Assembly: GCA_964035545.1 (NCBI GenBank)
Contig: OZ037765.1
Location: 25,419,504-25,483,503, forward strand
Direction: 5' to 3'
DNA length: 64,000 bases
DNA from: Bugula neritina
Lineage: Eukaryota > Animalia > Bryozoa
A program made the position numbers and the translations under genes. How positions within the stretch are numbered: the stretch's first letter is position 1; each line of letters opens with the position of its first letter. This document shows positions 27,516 to 57,320 of the stretch, piece by piece. The notes beneath the pieces are model-generated. The model worked only from the letters and a program-made list of their open reading frames with translations, was not told the origin of the DNA and searched no databases.

Positions 27516-33745
<6,230 letters not shown>

Positions 33746-35660: not shown

Positions 35661-38600
35661 TTAGTAAGCCGGGCTTACGTTACGAGCACGGCTACCACGC
35701 CCACCACCGCTGCCAGCACTGGGTGAGCGACGTGATCCGCTGCCACCATCAATGTTAGAATCTGAGTCCCACCTCTCCAGTTCTTCTCTCACCAGACGCT
35801 CCATCTGGTCTCTCTTCATCTCGTCGGAATGTTCAGTGGACTACACAGAAACATACATCATTAACATTGGTAAGCAGCAACATGGCTTTCTACAGCAGGC
35901 GTTCAATATAGATAGGCGAGAAGCAGTTGGAAAAGTTTCCATGAAATACTTTGTTAAAATTTATGAATACTGTCTGGATTTCAACTGATTGCCATGTGAC
36001 ACTTTTGAAATAATAAGATTCATCATATATTACATAACTATTGAATGAAAAAGTCAGCAGAACTCTGCTCTATTTATGCACCTTAATTTTTCAAGTGTTT
36101 GCAAACAATATTCTCTTATAAAAAGTTAGCAGTTGTCTACCCACAGTGCTAATTACAAAGAGAGTAGCAATGAATACCTCTGTGATTGAATCTAATATCT
36201 TCCCCATGTTTTCCTTCCTCTTTAGCTTGGCTTTCTCCATTGCCTCCAGTTTGACTAAGACAGCATCAATCTTGGACACAATGCTGCCAATGGAGTGCTC
36301 CATTCTATCCACCCTTCTCGATAATACCTGAAATTTTAAAATACAGACTCTACAACTTTGCCTGGCATCGCTATATACACTGGCATACTGACCACAGCCT
36401 TCCAGATCAGCTTAACCAATGAAATTTATTCTTGCTAAATATATCAATTCCCAAATAAATACATTAACTAGCAGCGCTGAGCTCCTCGAAACGTGACTTA
36501 CTGTAAACTCTTCGTAAGCAACGCCATTAATAGGCCGAAGTCCTTGTCGCCGTGAAGACCTGGTGCCACTGGTGCCCTCGTCATCGCTGTCCTCTCCACT
36601 GCTGTACGTGCGGCTGCTCCGTGATTTGGCTCGATTAGTTCTGGCCTCCAGCTCGGAGAATTCTCTAGCCAGTGTCGCCTATGTATCACAACAGAGCGTC
36701 GTAACCAATCACAAACAAAGGAAAGATGCAGTGCCATGATTCAATAAGATAGTTAAAAGCTGGCTAAAAGAAATGCCCATAGAACTACATAAAATAAAGA
36801 CACCATTTACACAGTTATATAACATGACAATACAACTATTAAACTTACACGTTGACCCTCAAGGTCATCCTGCATCTTACGCTGTTCTTCTTCGTCTAGT
36901 ATTCGGTCACCGTTCAAGTCATACTTGGCAAATGCAGCTTCAATCTCTTCATCTCTGTAACCTCGTCTAGAAAATTGTGAGATTTTCATGTTAAAAATGA
37001 TATTCCAAATTGTGTTATGATATATCACAATAACTTATTAATCTTGGAGCGTATAAAGTGTGTGAAGCTAAGTCATATATATATACAATATGCGCATGTT
37101 AATAGGAACGGAGAGAAATATTTACGATTTAAGTTCAGTCCTAAACTCAGACATGTCAATTTTCTTATTGTTGTCTTTATCTGCACTTCTCAGAGCCTTC
37201 TGTATGCCACTGATCTTGTCCTTCTTCAGGTTCATTTTGCTCATCATTTTGTTGTATTGCTAAATCATGAAATGAATAAACATCTGAAACAACCACTAAT
37301 TGTATAACAACAAACAGCTAAATGCTAAATACAATCAAAGGAAGTAGAAATGTCTCCCAGCAATTATTCATTGTGTATAAACCACAAGCGGCTCTAAACA
37401 AGTAGGTATAAACAACTGTATTACACATGTTTACAGCCTTACTTCATATCATACAGTGCTCCGACGTGTATATTGTTTCCTTCCACTTACCTGTTTGAAA
37501 AACTCTCCCATTTCTATTTCGTTCTTGGCATCGGCCAGCTCAGCCTTGACCTCGGCGTACGTGTCGTTAATGATGGCCAAGAACATGTTGAGCAAGACAA
37601 AGAAGACGAAGAAGACAAAGAAGATGAAGTAGATGGGGCCGAGTACGCGGTGAGCCGACTCCAGCTCGTGGAAGTCGAAATCTCCCAGGATGATACGGAA
37701 GAGAGTCAACCTACACGAGTCACGGGGAACATTCATAACGAATCAAACACAACTTTAAAAACAGAATTGAAAGCAATGATTCACATATCACAATCTAAAA
37801 CAATATTAAACTACATCATGAAAAAACTTTAAAAATTGCCGATTGTTTATTCAAATAGAACATACATGGCATTGATGAGGTCACTGAAATCCCGGACTTG
37901 AGTACCGAAGAGCAGGTAGCCGAGTTGGGCGAAGGCAAAGAAGATAATCATAAACATGACAAGAAAGCCGACAATGTCTTTTTTAGCCTTTCCAAGAGTA
38001 GTGGTCAGCTGAGACATGGTCTTGTTGAAGCTGACATACTTAAACACCTACAAGTATGAGTTTAGTGCTAGTTACAAAAACATGAATAACCTTTCAGTAC
38101 CTGCAATAGCTATCAACAGCAACATTAGTGCATATCTTTCAACTGTAACGCACAAGTCGTTGGCTAGTCATACCAATAATAATAGTAATACACAAGTGAG
38201 CATGCTTGTTAAAACATTCGCTATATAGTTATGAGATTACTCTTTTTTTCTAATTCACACAGAATCACAGAAATGTAGATCATGACAAACTTTCCAAAAA
38301 ACTAGCAAACATCTTCAGTTTTGCTTCTTGAACAAAAAGCATAGAGCTACATGCCATCCAATACACAGACATATATATTCTATCAGATAGAACATGGCCA
38401 CTATATCTACCAGATAACTTACCTTAATCCAGGCCAGGAAGATTGCCCCGGCTATGATGTAGTTGAACTGCACAGACCAGTAACTGAGAAACTCAAAGTC
38501 TCCAAACTCGTCGGGTTCAGCCAGCAATTTGGTCAGCTTGTCACTCACCTTTCAAATATAAACATATTGAGTCATATGCTGCTAAGAGCAGCAGCAAGCA

Positions 38601-41600
38601 GCATGTATGCTGTTGGTAAGCCTCAGTCACCCTCTTTCTATGTTATGCTTAGCTGAGCCATGCAACACTTTCACATCTATAAACTTCAATGATCACGTCT
38701 TGTATGGGTGGAGTCCAATAGCAGATTAGGTATTTTCATACATAAACATGCTACTGCTATAGTACACGGTTATTTATAGTTTATAGCAAGACTGTAAAGA
38801 ATAGAATGTTTCACAACTCTGTGATATTTTATCATTTACTTGTCTTTCTCCAGATCTGGTAGACAGAGTGAACTGCTCTCAGAGAAATATAACTCACTGA
38901 AACAAATAGTCACAGCCTACGTTTAGCTATAGTTTGTAGTTTCAACTCACTTCCCAGTAGCGGTAAGCACTGAAAGCCACACAGATCAGGGAGATGCCAA
39001 GGATGAGCAGATCCAGCCAGTTCCAGATGTCATAGAGATACTTGAGTTTGTGCTTCTTGATCTACACACACAAAAACATGATAAGGAATTGTCTCCCTAC
39101 GGCTAATTAACACGTGGGCAGTGAAAAAGTAAATTAGTGTGCGGGTCTTACCTCCAGAGACTCTTCAACAATGTAGTAGAGGAGGAAAAGGACAAATATC
39201 CCCTCACAACCCAGCACAATGTAGTCAAATGTGGACACATATCTTATCAACTTAACAGTACGAAAGGTCCAGGAGGGAATAACTCCACCAGTAGCAGGGA
39301 ATTCAACCAGCAATCTAACAAGGAAAAAAATGTCAATGTGATAATGCAACTCTAACCAGCTTAGGTAAAATTCTTTTTATGGTGATATATTTTAATAACC
39401 AATAACTCACAATTATAGAATAGCTACAAAAATATTAGGAGAGCTTTTAAAAGAGAAAAGGGTTTTAAGTATTTCAATAATATAAAAGTGCAATGTACAC
39501 ACGTATCTCCCTTTCTGATTACCATTAGCAATTCCATATATGAATTGCTATATCATCTCAAAGTTCACCAATAGTGATAGCTCAAGCTTTGGTTCCATGT
39601 AGTGCCCACAAATTTTCAAAAGAATTTAAGACAAACATGAGAATACTGTACATACAAACCTCACAATACAAAACAAGTTGATGTTAGCATTATAGACAGT
39701 AAAGTCAAAGAAGACAACTCTAGTTCCCCTGTCTATCCACAAGTTCTGCTTTAGATCTTGAATAATCGCAACAGAATGCGAGGAGTTAGTAGCCAAATTC
39801 TGGTAGTAGCCAGCACCGCTGTACGTGTGTAGCATCCCTTTCACATTACCAGACTCCAAATCGTCAGCTTTATGATACGTCCATCTGTTAGAATACACAT
39901 CTTATAAACATTCGTAGTAATCTTCTGTTGATAGAAAAATGACATCTTAATAAAACTAAAGAGGGCTGACTACTGCCACCCCCCTCCCCCCCCCCTTAAT
40001 AGAAACATTAGCTTACGCTGATCCCTCCATCTTGCCAAAGGGATTAGTTTCTTCTACGGAGGCGGTGTAGGCGCTATAGCACTGCTTGATCTCTTCTTCA
40101 AAGTCAGAATGAATGTCACAGGAGCTGTTGCTCACCTAAAGAAGAGTGGCCGGCCATTAGCAGGAGAACTTAACCAAAGACATAACTGTTTAAATTAATC
40201 AACCTGGTTAAGCATTGCTTAAAGTAAGGTGAGATAAAGATCAACTGGAAACAGATGTTATTTCTAACAGCACTAGGTATTTAGTAATGAGTGAAGGCAC
40301 AGCCATTACCTTGATCTGTCTGATACGGGGTACACCAAGCATCTTGTTCTCAAAGTAGATATAGCCGAGGTCTTCTCCAGTCACATTATCACTGTTATAG
40401 TACGTCTCCCAGTCCTTGTACAATCCATTGATCAATGGGCCCTCCGAAAACTGTCAGCCAAAATTGCAGATCGTATGACGAGGTTTTCATGTTGCATATT
40501 ATATCTAACTTTATGTTATGTTACACATAGGCTGCATTGTATGCAAATAGGAAATATTCTTGTCATTGCATTTTGGGATTAGTGATGACACACACCATAC
40601 AGGTGACACACTTTACCGGTGACACATCATACAGGTGACACACCATACAGGTGACACACTCTACAGGTGACACACCATGCAGGTGACACACTATACAAGT
40701 GACACACACTATACAGACTGCAACGCATCACAAGCAATGAGTAGCACCTGTCAGCTGATCTCGCATCATAAACACATGCTTTCCAGGAGAAACTCAGAGT
40801 ATTATGACTCACTCTCCAGAAATCCTGCATGGTGGTCATCCCTCGGAAGCTATTCTTAGTATCAGCAAAAGTAGAATCAAGAAAGAGCTCCTCCATGACT
40901 TTTGTGTAGTAGTACATGTTGATGTTTGTCATTCCGAATGTCACTAAATGAAATAAAAAATAGAACAAATGAAAATATAATATATGGGAAGCTTAGCTTT
41001 ATAAAACTTGTGCTGAAAATTGTAAAACTTGAATTCAACTTTGATAATTTATGAAATTTAACAAAATAACCATCACTCTTTGATCATACTAGTTTCTCCT
41101 TTTTATGCCTCGAAAAATAAGGGTCACCACGTAATCATATTGATTTTTGCAATTAAATATTCAACAATCGATAGTGTACATAGATATTAATTAAATGCAT
41201 ATCATGGTTATTCAATATTAAGTATATTGTAACTTTTGTTTGATATTAATGGAATATTGATTGGGGGTTATCAAAGGTGAAACAAACATGGCCGAATCAG
41301 ATAAAATGCAGTTTTCTTATTCAGTGAATAGTAAAGATACAGCATACAGCGGAGCATCAAAAATGATGAATGATCACTTAAATATGCAAATCGGTTTAGA
41401 CATCACATAAACTCATCAAACTAGTTCTGACCTAATGTATTCAAATAGAACAAAAACACAGCCCTTCCGCTTCAACATTTACAGCTAAATGTTAGAAAGT
41501 AAGAGTCTTGGCTAATAAAAATACTTTGTTTTTCATCAAAACAATACATAATATGTCGCACACGCTTTTGAATTAGCTACTGCATCATAACCAAAGTTTA

Positions 41601-42454
41601 GACTCAACAAGCACACACACACACGTTCACACACATACACTCGCATACACACATGTGCACATAATAGGTGCAAGTAACACTTACAGACAAGAAGAATAGT
41701 GAGAAATATGCCGTAGATTAGGAGCTCTCTGAGCAAAACATAAGCTTTGGTCTCACTGTCGGCAGTCTTAGAGTCCATAAGGCTAGAAGTTACCCAAATA
41801 GCTGCGAAAATAATAGTTGGTGCAAAGTAAACGAAAGTGATTTAAAAACAACAGTGTGCAGGTGAAGGCAGCCATGGCCGTGAGGCACTCTTCAAACCGT
41901 TACTTACATATAACCAGAACAGTGAGAAATGTTGCATATAAACACAGCTCTCTCAGAATTGTAGCTGCTTTTGTATTGTTATCTTCAAGGGCTTCGGCAT
42001 CCAATGTGAGCCGAGTAGCCCAAAGAGCTAATACACACAGATAATATAATCAATTTACAGTTGACTCTGATACAATGTTTTCAAATAAAATAAATTCTAT
42101 CAGCCACATATTCTGTTCACCAAGTCAACTTGCTTAAGAAATTTTTAAAAAATCATATATTTACTTACATCTTAAGCCATTCTTAAACTTGGTAAAGCCA
42201 GAGACGGGAGCTGGCTTGCTCTTGTTCTTTTGCTGCCCGGCAATCTGAATTTCACCATTGACGTACACCTCTCCCTCCATTGCAGTTGGCATCATGTCTC
42301 CTTCGTCAGCCAAAGTCAAGTCTCGGCTCTCAAACTCCCCGCTACCACTTTGTTGGGAGTCTGGCCGACCTCCCGGTGCATCCAAACCGTCGTCATTCCA
42401 GGCATTTCGAGAGTTGCTGCTGGACGACCTCTTACCAGACGAGTGTCGACTCAT
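35661..42454 (-). CDS. PKD2: Polycystin-2 (TRPP channel), tandem paralogue A (more canonical)
   Basis: 16 exons: 42454-42169, 41801-41685, 40943-40813, 40450-40310, 40135-40017, 39884-39660, 39314-39152, 39061-38951, 38548-38423, 38047-37866, 37710-37491, 37259-37126, 36966-36849, 36678-36502, 36327-36178, 35840-35661. Motifs: [78 protein letters not shown]. Confidence 0.95.
40587..40715. repeat. 16-bp minisatellite (AGGTGACACACCATAC)n in a PKD2-A intron
   Basis: About 8 degenerate copies. Confidence 0.88.
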
Positions 42455-50049: not shown

Positions 50050-53000
50050 TCACCGAGACATTTGAACAAGTTCTAAGTCTATCCACTCAGTAATGTCATG
50101 CACCACATCTATTCTCTCCATTTCATTCTCATTAAGGCTCAACAATAAATGCTTAATAGCATATCCTTGATGTGATAGCTCAAATAACAAACAGTACGTA
50201 GGGCTTTCTTGTTTGCCTAGCTCATCAATGTCTCTCTGGGAAAAATTCCTCTCTTCTGTAAAAAAAACTTGATGGTAAAGGATCACTGATTTAAGGCAAA
50301 CTTATAGGGCAGGAGAGGCAAAAACCACAAGCATTACAAGTTATGATGCAATCAATTCCCTTTTGCAATCCTAACAAAGCCAAGCTATAGAAAAGCTTAT
50401 CATAGATTGAACTGAAGTTCAAATCCCACTTTGTCCATGGCTTGTATAAGATAATAAACTGATAGCTTTCACCAAGTGTTTGTGATTATAGTGATCCTGG
50501 TGATCAGCAAATTTTACTTCACAACTTTATTTGACTTACCGCGGACATAAGGAATAAAAAATAATCAAATTTCAATAGAGAAAAACTTAACAATAAATGC
50601 TTTATTTACTGGTGAAATCTACTATACAATACACATATCCTTATGCAGAGGTCAAAATATATTTTAATAGGCATTGAATAAAAATTGGCTTATAAAAAAG
50701 CATTTAAATGTAAATTATTCATAAATGATATGCAAGAACCTACTTGCTAGTCCAATCCAGTTTCTGCCCAGAATATTGTCACAATCCAACACTTCAAGAA
50801 TCTTCTTGGGGATTGTGTAAGCAGGTCTGTTCAGAATTTCTTCTCTTCTTGCATTGCTGTCTGGTGTATTGCTACAGACACCTTGCCAAACGTAGTCTGT
50901 TACTGACTCAGTTTTCTCTAAGCTGATGGACAATAATAACAAGTAACTTCAGTTTACCCTAATAAATATATGTGTGGTGAAAATGCCAAAGCTAAAATTT
51001 TCCGTAACACGTGCATTGTAAAGGGTCTTAATTGGAGTGTTTTTAAAATAGCCAATAACTTAGATGAGCCAAAAATGTTCTACTTTTATACTAAATTAGG
51101 AAAAAATTTAGTTACTAAAATATGCAATTAATTTTACCTTTATTCAACAAGCACGCAGCTGCCTATAATAAATACTCACTACTTAGAGTCTGAAAACTAG
51201 CATTAGTCAAAGTAAAAAGAAGCCTTATTCTGATACAAAACTTACATCACTATTGTAATTATCCTTAAACTATTGTTCAGATCACAGGCTATTTAGAATA
51301 ATCCTTTATCTATAGTTTAAACTAAGATCTAAAATTAAAGGCCTCGGTGAATAAAAGTTTTATTTTGCTGTGAAAAATTACAAGTGCACACTAAACAACA
51401 CACACTAGCAATAGAAAACTTAGAGCGCATTTATGACAGTTGTAAAAGAAAATAAAGTGACAATTTGCTAAATAATATGATGAGTGGTTATATCTAGTAG
51501 GAATAAACTCATCTCAATTCTGGGAAAGTATACTATCAAATTGCTCTGAACAAATTGAAAAACAAGTCACAAATAAATTGAACATAACAAATATGCAAAC
51601 TAACTTGACACCAGAGCAGGATAGAACAGGGGCCTGGTCCAGAATATTGATGGCATGGAAAGGTCTCTCTACACAGGAGTCTCCTAGGGGACATGGAGGG
51701 CCAAATACTGTCTGATGCGGTCTCTTGAAACTCTTGTTGAAGTGATTTATTAGGTCAACCAGATTTTTCACAAATACCCTCTTCGATGTCTTTTCACTGT
51801 TCAAACTAAAGATAACTACTAAGTTAACAACACTGGTGGGAAGTCAGAGTGTTGCAATAACTTGATCAGCTCTATGTATTTCAACTGTCAATATTTCGAC
51901 TCTAACCATTAAAGCAAAAAGTTTGTATATAAGACATTGTTGCATAGGAAATGCTAGCAAAGTAAGTCATGAAACGAAATACCAACTAACCTAATAAGAA
52001 AGAAGCTGAGTGAATGATCTGCTGCGGGTATTGGAACACACTTCAACTGGCTCCATTTTGTGTTGACAGTGCGAAGTACGCAAACATCACAGTCAAACAG
52101 ATCAAACCTACCAACACTTGAGTGGTAGTTAATGTTACTAGTTCTAGCTTTTAGACTGAGCTCATTGAGAAATGCTGTGATGAACAGGAGACACCGGTTC
52201 CCTTTGTATGACATAATGAGGTTTGGAGTCATGTCTACGGCTGGCAAGGCAACTGGAACCGAAGGCCCATCACCTTGCTGGAACTTGGAGATGAGAGGAA
52301 ACTGAAACTGATCTACAATTATAATGACATGCCTGCTACAAACTAAGAACATGGCGCTACAAACTAAGAACATGGGGTGTATCTAACCTTATTTTCTGTA
52401 GTTATTGTAAGGATTGAAATACCATTGCTATTGGTAGGTAGCACCACGTGCAACTCTCTCATTATGCTAATGATTTTCTCCGAGGCTACGCAGTTCAATA
52501 CTCTTTTCAAGTTGGCGTCGGAGACCGTGCCTTGCTCCACTTGTGAGTATTGACCCACGGACAATGTATACAGAGCATCACATATTCTGTGAGGGTGAAT
52601 GAGCAAGGAGTGTCTGATGGTGGCACACGATTTACCAATTGACTTGCTGTAGGACAGGTCTGGAATCAGTAAATTACACGCAGACATTAACAATAAAGTA
52701 TCATACTTTTTTGTGCAGAAGATTTCAAATAATAAACAAGAATTATGTCAACTTTATGAATACAAACTTATTAATCATAAACTCAATGCATGCCACCATA
52801 AAAGAAGAAAAATTTAAAGGTCCACAATTAAGTTCTTAGTCAATTATTCAACAAATAGTTTTTGACTTCATGACAGTAATAAAAAATTAAAATACCTGAC
52901 ACGTAGGCTAGCCCAGCATTATGTAAGTATTGCAGGGTACCAGAGAACATTATTTCAAAGTTGGATTGATCCACCTCAAATCCATCATTTAATGCTCGGA

Positions 53001-56000
53001 GTTGCTCTTCTATGTCATTTGTCTCAATAAATCGAAACCCTTCCTTGTTGTTTTTCTGCGACAGCATTACTGCGATGTATGGATATACAGACACGGGTGC
53101 AGTTTTCAGGACGTTCTCAGACAAGTTTTTCAACTCTCCAAGCAGCCTAGAACGAATGGCAGCTATCTCAGAGCACAAAGCAAATGGATACTGATTGGGG
53201 GAGGTGAGCACCAGTCGATTTTGATGAGGTCTGATTATCTTGTTGATTTTAGATATTAGTGCAGCATCAGGCCCTTGGCCAACATTTGAGAGGACCAACA
53301 AGACTTTACCATCCAATGAAATGCTGTTGGTTTGATTCGCTGATCGCGTGTAGGTGTGAATCTCATCAAGTAAGTTGGAGAGTTTGAGCTCCAACTCTCG
53401 GCTGCAACTAAATGCTTGAGCATCAATCACTATCACATTCATAGAATGCTTACAGAAAATTAGAGGTGAAAGCCATGGATTCAGTAGTTCAGTGTTTGGG
53501 CCTGTAAGCGATAAAATTTCTAGGTGCATTCTGTGAGAAATCCTATCAAACTCTGTCAGGTTTGAAAATCTTCGCAAACTGCCAAAACTAAGAGGGCCAT
53601 CCGAAACATGATCGGGCATGTTGAGCAGAAATTCTCTACTTTCACCTTGTATTGCTGCTTTCTCAAAAATCCTCTCTACTGTTTCGTGCATCTCATAGCT
53701 GCAAGTCACTCCATCAATTGGAGAACTGTTACTACAGTCAGCTGGCAGAAACATGCTTTCTGTTTCAGAAAAACAAGCATGGACATGGCATTCATTTACA
53801 ACGCCACCGTATGGACAAGATGATCTAGTTATGTTCTCAAATATCTGCAAACGTAACTGATCTGCATGATTGGTAGCATGTTTACCAATTCCGTGGAAAA
53901 TAATTCGATAACGACACAAGCGTTCCATGATTTTAACTTGAATACTGGTTCGGGTTTTATGAAGCATTTCTGTGCCTTTCCTTAAAAATTCTGGAGAAGA
54001 TGTTGATTGCCCATGGGTGCTCAGGGGATCTGGTTCCACCAATGAAAACATATCACTTGAATTGTAGGATTGAACAATACTAGGGCGAACTGTGTTGATT
54101 GAAAATGTTCGCTCAAACCTGTTGTTTGTCAATTTTGCTGTTGGTTTTTTTATGGTAAAAGTAATGGGTTGATCTTTGCGTTGGGTTAGTAAATTCTTGA
54201 ACCATACTGTAAACTAAAAAAAACATATATAATATAAGTTGATTACTTAATTGAATTTGAGCTACATGTTGATAGATGAAAAAATAGGATGCAAACAGTT
54301 GGACTTGACCGAACTTAGCGGTGTAGAGTGAGCCCTTACCACTACAATACAAGATCAAACTGAAATAAAACGATTTAAATGTGATTATTAAGCTTGCAGT
54401 TACATTCATTTCGATTAAAAATATTTAGCTGCTTTTAGTCAGACTTAAACTTTGACTGATCGAAAACAATTAAACATATTTAAAATTGTAAATTAATACA
54501 TCCAGATAGATATAAAGTGAAACTAAAAAAATTTGTGAATATTTTGACTTGTTTTCTTCAAAAAGACTAGTTTGGCAGTAGGTTGCAAACTACAAAATGG
54601 CATCTAATGAAGTATGCAACTTTCGAAAGTGACAGGCAATCTTCAAATAAAAATGTTAATAGTACTGCAGAAGCTCTACATATTTAACAAAATAACAAAA
54701 CTGATACACAGTATATTAACAGAACTTCACTTTAGTCAATATTTTAAATGCCTACAAAAAATCAGCCCATAAAAAGAAATTAATATACTTTGGCAGAATA
54801 ATTTACAATATTCTGGTGCTTAGGTTGACTATATCAGTACTTGATTAGGATTTTCCTATATTTACCAACAATTTCCAAATAAAACAATTAGATTTTTGTT
54901 ATAAAAACAACCGGTGTTAGAAAGTTGATAAGAAAAGTGTATCTGAAATGATGCATATAGAATGCAAGGGCACTCACTCCAGATGGTGGTTCAAAGGGTA
55001 CTGGCCTGTCATCTATAGATATTAGCCAATCACCAGGCTCTAAGACTTGCTGAAGTGGATCTATGGAGGCAGAGTGGTAGATCTCCTTTACCATAACCCA
55101 TTTTTTCTACATCAACATACAATAAAATGATATGAAAAAGCATAGATAAGATAGAGAGGACAACTCATCAAACTAATTGGTGCAAAAAATGTTAACATAA
55201 AGAGATTTACGCCTTATAAAAACTACATCCATCAAATACTCAGGGTGTTATCATTAGAACCAGGGGTACATAAATCTAACCAGCATCAAGTATGAAAACA
55301 ACATCAGCTTATTAGTTGAAAAAAATAGGCCAAGTAAAGCAGTATGACTAGAACCATATAATTGTATGAATGCGCTGGGTCAAGTAAATTCAACTGAAAA
55401 AAAAACAAATATTTAAAATCCATCAGTATATAAGAACCATATTTTGACTAATTAGGGTATAGAACTGTATTTGTTGGAATATTGAATCTTATATAATAGA
55501 CAGGGGCAACTCTTTACTTGCATGCCTTCAGTGCATTGCATATAGCTAATTTCCTAAATATATCTAGGAACCTCAAGGTAAATTTCTTCAGCATAGAAAT
55601 GTAAAAATAGAGATGACCAGCTATTAAAACAATGATCTAATAATATATATGTTATGATTAAACTTACATGATGTTGAGCATTTGACTTCTTCTTTTTGAA
55701 CTTGACAGAATTGATAATTAGAGAGGCTGCCTGATAATGAACTTGCATCTCATTTGACCAGATAATGCACACAGGTTTATCTAAAGCTGATGCAACTAGC
55801 TCGCTATACTCTTGGCCAGAGTTAAGTCTAGGAGCAGCTACAGAAAAGCAGAAAAATCCTAAAACTATTTTTCCATAATGACAACGATCTACATCAATTT
55901 GTTTTGAAATTGGAGAAAAAAATTGCTTTATCATAATCATTTACAAATACATGTGCAATAAGTTACCATAACTATCACCGAAAGTTAATAGGCTAAGGTC

Positions 56001-57320
56001 GAGAGAGCCTGTGGAGCTTGGTATAGATGAGATTTCCCCAAGTGACTCTGCTGTTGCATATTTAGTAACTTCTAAATTCCAAGTGCTGAGAGAATGCGCT
56101 TTTGGGCTGTTACAGTAAATCTCTAAAGATGATGTAACACCGTTTACAGCCAGAAGAATGTCACCAACTTGCAAGCCTAGATTAAGATTCGTACCCGAGG
56201 CATTCGTAATTTGATACTAAAATATAAAACACTTGTTTTATAACTTAATTAAATTTTTCTTGCAAAATTTTGAAACAAAGAAATCAGATGCAAGGCTTTA
56301 TATATATACACACATACACACACACAGAGATAGATAAGTAAAAAAAGTGTTCGGAAGACAATAGCTGGTCTGACAAAAAAACTAGGTTTCAAAAAGTCCA
56401 AAATAAAATGCAACAATAGTCTATAAAATCTTAGCCTGCCAATTGTTAATTTAAGATTTTCAGGCTGCAAAAATGCTAAAAACCACTTTTTTACCCATAT
56501 TAAGCTTTGCTTAAATCACATCTGAACTAAAAAACAACTGCTTATGACATGGTGACTAACACAAAATTTAACCACTGAACTCAGATGAGTTGATGGTGGC
56601 ACAAAATCACAGAGTATTTTTCAACTTTCACGACCAAATGCAGGCATTACGATACAAAGAAGCACTTGTTTGACCAATTTCTGCAAGATCTGTAGCTATT
56701 TTTGCATAAACATGACATTTTATCACAAAAAAAGTAAATTTCAAAGCAAAAAATCTGCTAACTCCATTCTGCCTCTTTTCTTATTCATTCTAATAACCAC
56801 ATCTAATATGAAAATATAATGATGTAAATGGGTAATATGTAATGCGATTGATTATATCTAAAACACGACCTCAGACCAATAAACTATTACTGAGATAATA
56901 ATTTAAATTGTATAAGCTCAATTCTTTTGAATCTTCAAACACTGAGGCACTCTTCTAGCAAAACCAATAATTAGCGCACACGTTCTTTATAATTACAATC
57001 ACAAATACAGGTATTCAATTAAACAAATACCTTATGTGATTAACTGAAAATATGACAATTTGTGTTTTAAATGTTCAATAAGAACCAGAGAAAAAGTTAA
57101 TAATATTTTGTACTAAAAAGTTTCACACAGTATTTGCATCTCTAAACTAAAACTTTATCACAAACAATAATATACATGTGCAGCTGTTGGTTTAGCAAGT
57201 TATTGAAAATACACTTACTGTGCCATTTTCTAGTTTTTGAAATGAAAGCCCAAATCGATCATTTTCCTTAGGAATACATATCTTATGAACGCCAGTTGGA
57301 GAAGGTGTATTGGTCGCCAT
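50050..57320 (-). CDS. PDZ-PDZ / degenerate Roc / COR / C-terminal death-domain protein (ROCO-like)
   Basis: 10 phase-consistent exons: 57320-57219, 56216-55967, 55837-55668, 55106-54978, 54213-52896, 52659-52388, 52307-51991, 51805-51605, 50922-50744, 50255-50050 (TGA). PDZ1: DRFGLSF...GLQVGDILLAVNG. PDZ2: LEPGDWLISIDD...PITFTIKK. COR-like: TLQYLHNAGL, LLIHPHRICDAL, IISIMRELHVV..FQFP. Death domain: LDCDNILGRNWIGLAS..FSQRDIDEL..SPTYCLL..MERIDVVHDI. Confidence 0.78.

Follow-up and report, generated by a model that had tools for sequence, protein, structure and literature searches.

We analysed a 64-kb stretch of the genome of the bryozoan Bugula neritina (assembly GCA_964035545.1, contig OZ037765.1, positions 25,419,504 to 25,483,503), hereafter the window, to whose full length all coordinates refer. 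The window consists of AT-rich animal DNA (~29-40% GC) and holds, on its minus strand from 57320 to 50050, a ten-exon gene that an earlier note, made from the letters of the sequence, had described as encoding a ROCO protein without GTPase activity. We consider it probable that the product is a fast-evolving, single-copy ROCO pseudoGTPase scaffold composed, in this order, of two PDZ units (PDZ1 and PDZ2), a Roc G domain devoid of its motifs, a COR-A domain, an alpha/beta domain where COR-B would be expected, a Cys/His motif and a death domain. Two PKD2-like genes and a homeobox gene lie downstream on the same strand and are described further below.

The structure of the gene could be established in detail. 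A script check of exon boundaries and lengths confirmed ten exons that together measure 3132 nt (1043 codons) and run from an ATG at 57320 to a TGA stop at 50052-50050. All nine introns, which range from 80 to 1002 nt, begin with GT and end with AG, and the exon phases are consistent throughout, in agreement with the earlier claim of one open frame of about 1000 amino acids. At the junction of exons 8 and 9 (51610-51612 / 50915-50917), a second GT/AG pair is offset by two bases on each side; its use leaves frame and length intact and affects a single residue (Glu or Gly), and homology does not discriminate between the two junctions.

Relatives were sought by running phmmer exhaustively over 1.84 billion representative proteins, with the 430-residue reading frame of the large central exon (exon 5) as query; only 11 proteins came back at E <=1e-3. 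Ten of these, from marine metagenome or SRA contigs, are fragments ~400 residues long, each apparently the same large exon annotated as a gene of its own. The remaining relative, P0004, comes from the bryozoan Watersipora subatra, where it is recorded as an 'uncharacterized protein' of 1023 residues. Exon 5 and the 11 relatives make up the 12-sequence family set (alignment A1). In all further searches the window exons were used singly, and P0004 served as a full-length stand-in for the spliced window protein. A tblastn comparison of P0004 with the window gave eight minus-strand matches in protein order, which cover P0004 residues 42-1023 with E values from 1e-2 to 1.7e-55; as judged from the sequence matches, such an ordered series far exceeds chance. 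With the window exons as queries, contigs L002 and L003 were each found to carry the complete gene in the same order, and L001 and L005 a part of it. The search for the same architecture elsewhere, which the earlier note had proposed, was thus answered by these two contigs and by a single full-length protein: two word-indexed searches, one with P0004 and one with profile A16, found no full-length relative beyond that of W. subatra.

Only one annotated proteome holds the family. Its named members come exclusively from cheilostome bryozoans and the others from unlabelled marine metagenome or SRA contigs, and in its own genome the gene is present as a single copy. The central exon is 33% identical to its Watersipora counterpart and only 24% identical to that on L002, whereas the neighbouring PKD2-like exons are more than 90% identical between the window and L002; we therefore consider the family to be fast-evolving. 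The alignments are read region by region: they are shallow (4-12 sequences), the usable ones each cover a single region (A7, A11, A12, A14 and A15), and MAFFT alignments of the whole C-terminal half (A3, A6, A8 and A9) were discarded because non-overlapping exon fragments scattered despite the P0004 anchors.

The central part of the protein is encoded by exon 5 (52896..54213), whose 439 codons comprise the last PDZ2 strand, a low-confidence linker, the Roc-like pseudoGTPase domain (residues ~98-370) and the first COR-A helices. An AlphaFold2 model of this exon, built on alignment A1, had a predicted local distance difference test score (pLDDT) of 74 and a predicted template modelling score (pTM) of 0.73. 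The beta/alpha core is Ras-like, with ~70 helical residues inserted between beta2 and beta3, and additional helices come after it. Foldseek against the PDB placed LRRK1 first (E 1.6e-5), and the further top matches were C. tepidum RocCOR (3dpu), a leucine-rich repeat (LRR)-Roc-COR protein (6hlu), LRRK2 and M. barkeri Roco2; the alignments spanned 350-390 columns. Structural comparison with VIA yielded Z 14.7 over 231 residues against LRRK1 630-920 and Z ~14.5 against LRRK2 1329-1586, both of which ranges correspond to Roc plus the start of COR-A. Gtr1/RagA reached similar values (Z 14.3-14.6, root-mean-square deviation 2.5-2.7), but with only ~156 residues aligned.

Complementary searches pointed in the same direction. 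In an ESM Atlas shape search, a mollusc 'COR domain-containing' cluster came out on top, with a template modelling (TM) score of 0.55 over 320 aligned residues spanning exon 5 residues 90-439, and the runner-up scored 0.43; Roc is found in 97% and COR-A in 67% of the members of the top cluster. An Atlas feature search with exon 5 independently gave Roc/COR-A clusters. Finally, aligning the family with seven canonical LRR-Roc-COR proteins of the same genome by hhalign gave P 0.003 over 54 columns, located where Roc ends and COR-A begins; there, YPH..V.LSQ...L.YLHNxG of the family falls on vP..W..v.Q...L.YMHNxG. We concluded that the central fold in this model is Roc plus COR-A because of the structure matches, not because of sequence profiles. 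Of the Roc-COR layout proposed in the earlier note, the G-domain fold running into COR-A therefore stood, with its best matches in LRRK1, LRRK2 and bacterial and archaeal Roco proteins by Foldseek, VIA and Atlas, but Pfam provided no profile match and the COR-B part was not established.

The earlier note had also assigned three altered stretches to the GTPase motifs G1, G3 and G4; all three were found where it had placed them, and its mapping agrees with the strand order of the exon 5 model. At the degenerate G1 (53872..53913, minus strand as all features of the gene; exon 5 residues 101-114), strand beta1 (101-109) passes through a one-residue turn straight into helix alpha1 (111-125), with neither a P-loop nor a Walker A motif. 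The degenerate G3, LEILSLTG (53500..53523), lies at the end of beta3 (strand 227-236 in the model) and has lost the DxxG aspartate, and the degenerate G4, VLLVLSNV (53281..53304), forms beta5 (strand 303-309) without NKxD. This loss is family-wide: in alignment A1 and a motif scan, none of the 12 members carries the Walker A pattern [AG]xxxxGK[ST], none has DxxG or NKxD at the expected strands, and no SAK-like motif follows beta6 in the 12-sequence alignment. The claim that all GTP motifs are altered thus extends from the studied gene to the whole family. At the G1 site, beta1 ends in FHH in most other members, and the GK pair within 53872-53913 occurs in none of them, being specific to the studied species. 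The canonical ROCO genes of the same genome, in contrast, retain GxxxxGKT in the form of GRSLSGKT or GQTMSGKT. With the P-loop and NKxD gone, no recognisable phosphate or guanine contacts remain, and we infer on good grounds that the central domain is GTPase-dead, as predicted from its motif loss.

Conservation within the family peaks in the stretch W-x-SP-x-x-x-C-K-H-S-x-N, located around the former switch II. Six His/Cys residues, H107, H145, C160, C171, H230 and C254 (exon 5 numbering), are invariant or nearly so within the family. Together with a Cys/His motif encoded by exon 8, the conserved His/Cys residues of the G domain may form metal sites.

The COR-type motifs quoted in the earlier note were both located, LQYLHNAGL at 52909-52935 in exon 5 and LLIHPHRICD in exon 6. 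Exon 6 (52388..52659) encodes the remaining, winged-helix-like part of COR-A and matches P0004 643-720 by tblastn (E 3e-13); it carries the HPHR motif and a 'G-x-x-S...L' stretch and is conserved in five species, with counterparts on L002, L003 and L005. An hhalign comparison of exon 6 with canonical ROCOs was not significant (P 0.055), with the alignment at a plausible COR-A place. Downstream, exon 7 (51991..52307; tblastn to P0004 744-839, E 2e-13) encodes an alpha/beta domain at the COR-B position, which ends in exon 8 (51612..51805; tblastn to P0004 830-908). When the Atlas was searched with the features of P0004 640-935, a region that spans exon 6 and the COR-B position, COR-B/COR-A clusters were retrieved with a score of 0.93. 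The AlphaFold2 model of P0004 736-930 (four-species alignment A11) reached a pLDDT of 56 overall, with values of 65-88 in its beta-alpha-beta4-alpha core. Foldseek with this model found nothing significant, the C. tepidum COR domain appearing at rank 9 with E 0.11, and an exhaustive VIA comparison listed KA1-like alpha/beta domains first (Z 7.7), with C. tepidum COR-B 789-885 at Z 6.1. Likewise, hhalign of the COR-B position and hidden Markov models of exons 7 and 8 gave nothing significant against the canonical ROCOs of the same genome. After the COR-B-like domain, exon 8 (51612-51805) also carries the motif FGPPCP...C...FH...C, which has the form C-x4-5-C-x5-6-H-x11-13-C and is conserved in four species.

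The N-terminal PDZ units are encoded by the first four exons and the start of the fifth. Exon 1 (57219..57320) provides the start codon and the first PDZ1 strands, including an RFGLSF motif that resembles a carboxylate-binding loop. It was not detected by tblastn with P0004 against the window, and its support consists of the ATG, the GT donor and a PDZ-like start resembling the N-terminus of P0004. Exon 2 (55967..56216; tblastn to P0004 42-158) contributes the remainder of PDZ1 with a GDILLAVNGV motif, followed by a Ser-rich linker. Exon 3 (55668..55837) comprises a linker and the first strand of PDZ2, matches P0004 and contig L001 by tblastn and has verified splice sites, and exon 4 (54978..55106) encodes the PDZ2 core. 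For PDZ2, Pfam PDZ_6 stayed below threshold (E 0.037 in the window, 0.016 in P0004), and a six-sequence profile (A14) searched against the PDB retrieved PDZ chains at E 4.7e-4 to 0.01, among them the PDZ of site-2 protease (E 4.7e-4) and that of CASK (E 0.005); PDZ domains make up the majority of the 60 chains listed, so that a profile match exists for this unit. PDZ1 gave Pfam PDZ at E 0.005 in P0004 and PDZ_6 at E 0.011 in the window, both below threshold. Its four-species profile (A15) matched almost exclusively PDZ domains in the PDB, via the GD..VNG motif only and with a best E of 0.0095, and an RFG[LF]SF loop is visible in the sequence; phmmer of P0004 1-95 against the PDB gave nothing useful. 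Of the two N-terminal PDZ-like units described earlier, PDZ2 is therefore modestly backed by profile matches, whereas PDZ1 depends on weak ones.

At the opposite end of the protein, exon 9 (50744..50917; tblastn to P0004 901-958, E 1e-8) encodes a linker and the first death-domain helices, and exon 10 (50050..50255) death-domain helices 3-6 and the TGA stop. Pfam Death (PF00531) aligned with P0004 941-1016 over profile positions 5-85 of 86 and scored 21.9 bits (E 1.9e-4), marginally short of the 22.6 cut-off. The four-species profile of the last exon (A12) retrieved the death domain of p75NTR at E 1e-3, followed by those of IRAK4 and MyD88. No Pfam Death match was obtained on the single window exons, a six-frame genome scan also missed this intron-split domain, and phmmer of the P0004 death-domain region against the PDB gave nothing useful. 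The C-terminal region is, from these sequence matches, probably a death domain, as the earlier note had proposed.

Several observations weigh against a ROCO pseudoGTPase scaffold and have to be set against the evidence above. Pfam Roc (PF08477), COR-A (PF16095) and COR-B were unmatched by the window exons at E <=1 and by P0004 and nine relatives at E <=0.1, and a six-frame COR-A scan of the genome found 24 other loci and missed the studied gene. Searching PDB sequences with the 12-sequence profile A1 returned no ROCO protein or GTPase, the best hit being a weak match to MukE (E 0.02). If only the Z-score is considered, Rag/Gtr GTPases fit the G domain no worse than Roc does. A COR-B identity for the modelled alpha/beta domain is compatible with the data but unproven, given the poor model, the KA1-like folds ranking above C. 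tepidum COR-B and the null profile results. PDZ1 relies chiefly on its GD-x-I-x-x-VNG motif, and the joining of the ten exons into one transcript is predicted from genomic sequence and homology.

Several of these observations would fit a central domain that is a pseudoGTPase with the small-GTPase fold but of non-ROCO descent, for example Rab, Arf or Rag-like, followed by an unrelated winged-helix and alpha/beta region, the likeness to Roc-COR then being convergent or generic. Such a descent would account for the equal VIA scores of Gtr1/RagA and LRRK1/LRRK2, for the unmatched Roc and COR profiles and for a COR-B-position model that is closer to KA1-like folds than to COR-B. We nevertheless regard it as unlikely: ROCO chains lead the Foldseek list and align over ~230 residues that include the helices after the G domain, compared to ~156 for plain GTPases; the top Atlas shape match over residues 90-439 is, by a clear margin, a Roc/COR-A cluster; two independent feature searches lead to Roc/COR-A and to COR-B/COR-A; and hhalign sets LxYLHNxG on the corresponding COR-A motif of canonical ROCOs. 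Some pseudoGTPases retain nucleotide binding without catalysis, and a similarly small chance attaches to the idea that the domain is a working switch or ligand binder after all, recognising a nucleotide in a non-canonical manner or a metal via its conserved His/Cys residues, in which case calling it dead would be wrong. The invariant or near-invariant His and Cys positions speak for this, as does the location of the most conserved stretch around the former switch II, which implies a function there. However, the P-loop is not simply mutated but shrunk to a short beta1-alpha1 turn in every member, and the base-specificity motif NKxD has been lost as well.

The gene model itself could, in principle, merge two neighbouring genes, one with the PDZ units and the G domain and one ending in the death domain, or represent a decaying pseudogene. 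Exon 1 is not confirmed by homology, and the joining of the exons is predicted from genomic sequence and homology, yet the annotated W. subatra protein holds all parts in one chain and the same exon order recurs on two more contigs from other organisms. Moreover, every frame is open, all splice sites are canonical, the total length is divisible by three and the introns are short. A merged-gene or pseudogene origin is thus highly improbable, and we rejected it on the basis of the single-chain W. subatra protein, the conserved exon order, the open frames and the canonical splicing.

The genome around this probable ROCO pseudoGTPase gene carries an expanded set of canonical LRR-Roc-COR genes. It contains at least 24 COR-A matches, many of them clustered and many in intronless LRR-Roc-COR frames of ~650-700 codons, and ~20 loci match Pfam Death in a six-frame scan. 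The canonical LRR-Roc-COR loci L009-L016 are located on contigs C7 (~4.8-7.7 Mb), C1 (~32.8-33.7 Mb) and C6. The closest named relative of one canonical ROCO is Bugula neritina EB796_002463 (89% identity), which combines caspase p20, Roc and COR-A. The canonical LRR-Roc-COR genes of this genome are candidate caspase-linked ROCO receptors.

The window contains two PKD2-like genes, which share the strand of the studied gene and lie downstream of it, at ~37487-42447 (-) and ~29762-33733 (-). On L002, a PKD2-like gene (L002:9700-12838) follows the family member at a distance of ~2 kb in the same orientation, and its exons are up to 92-97% identical to those of the 37487-42447 copy. Since L002 has its PKD2-like gene on the same side and in the same orientation as the window, microsynteny is conserved. 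A two-exon homeobox gene (47440-47063 and 46718-46410, minus strand), whose homeodomain ends in WFQNRRSRKSRK, separates the studied gene from the PKD2-like genes; no counterpart on L002 emerged from a tblastx comparison. On two other contigs (L003:265-1020 and L004:470-1225), a CREPT (RPRD1-like) gene adjoins the family member on the opposite strand.

A 2019 review distinguishes three ROCO groups, namely LRR-RocCOR proteins, LRR-RocCOR-kinases and DAPK1 with its death domain, the last being the only group with such a domain (PMC6337361). Like the studied protein, DAPK1 runs from Roc through COR to a C-terminal death domain and has no LRR before Roc. Unlike it, DAPK1 possesses a kinase, a calmodulin-binding segment and ankyrin repeats, whereas the studied protein has two N-terminal PDZ units and has lost its G motifs; no kinase or ankyrin Pfam match was found in any window exon or in full-length P0004. 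Among solved structures, the central exon matches the Roc-COR regions of LRRK1 and LRRK2 best; it differs from them by an identity of 10-14%, by the insertion of ~70 residues between beta2 and beta3 and by the absence of GTP-binding motifs, and the protein as a whole lacks their LRR, kinase and WD40 parts. With LRR-Roc-COR proteins of the MFHAS1 type and the Roco proteins of C. tepidum and M. barkeri (structural matches 3dpu, 6hlu and 4wnr), it has the Roc-COR core in common. The canonical YMHNxG of the genome's own LRR-Roc-COR copies aligns with LxYLHNxG at the COR-A start of the family; those copies have LRRs, an intact GxxxxGKT and intronless frames, while the studied gene has ten exons, a single copy and neither LRR nor P-loop.

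Among the mollusc COR-A clusters of the Atlas, some members carry Death or CARD domains, so a combination of COR-A with a death fold in lophotrochozoans is shared with the studied family; no PDZ is listed for these clusters, and no sequence relationship to the family was detectable. In the Atlas Roc/COR-A clusters that match exon 5, 82-100% of the members score as Pfam Roc, unlike the studied family. Outside the ROCO proteins, pseudoGTPases such as the pG domains of p190RhoGAP and CENP-M retain the G-domain fold as a structural module after motif loss. In the library searched, no paper joins 'pseudoGTPase' or 'pseudo-GTPase' with ROCO, Roc-COR or COR domain; both spellings co-occur with LRRK2 in a single paper, a virology review on an unrelated subject. 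The novelty asserted in the earlier note therefore needs narrowing: an orthologue had already been deposited, unnamed, from W. subatra, and mollusc COR-A proteins with Death or CARD domains are present in Atlas clusters, but the PDZ tandem together with a dead Roc is new.

Gene structure, domain order, the Roc/COR-A fold and the motif loss throughout the family can be regarded as shown. As to how such a protein might act, its Roc-COR core would no longer cycle GTP and would instead form a fixed structural unit that probably dimerises. The PDZ units would tether the protein to the C-terminal tails of membrane or junction proteins, and the death domain would draw further death-fold proteins into an oligomeric complex that signals in immunity or apoptosis. 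A second option is that the inactive core associates with the genome's many active LRR-Roc-COR proteins and modulates them. This adaptor or regulator role is something we infer only. We put forward tentatively, as a possibility with the odds against it, that this is the first natural ROCO family in which Roc-COR serves as a nucleotide-free, constitutive dimerisation hub, either coupling PDZ-bound membrane proteins to death-domain signalling or pairing through COR with the expanded caspase-LRR-Roc-COR proteins and restraining them. In that case, the PKD2-like channel encoded next to the gene in two species would be one candidate PDZ partner.

The impact of these findings is limited by the family being tied, so far, to bryozoans and unlabelled marine contigs and by its function being deduced. 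ROCO proteins (LRRK2, LRRK1, DAPK1 and MFHAS1), a family of relevance to disease in which the studied protein is a rare variant, are defined as GTPases, and a conserved family with the Roc/COR-A fold but no nucleotide motif would reveal what such a scaffold does when its switch is gone. A PDZ tandem before Roc, COR and a death domain, with neither LRR nor kinase, would constitute a fourth ROCO architecture beside the three recognised ones. COR-B mediates the dimerisation of CtRoco, and for LRRK2 the link between the Roc GTP cycle and COR-mediated dimerisation is still debated (PMC6337361). If the reading as a nucleotide-free hub is true, the family would represent a natural experiment that separates COR-mediated assembly from this GTP cycle. 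The family also fits a wider pattern in which ROCO proteins linked to death folds and caspases have diversified among lophotrochozoans, probably with roles in immune defence or cell death.

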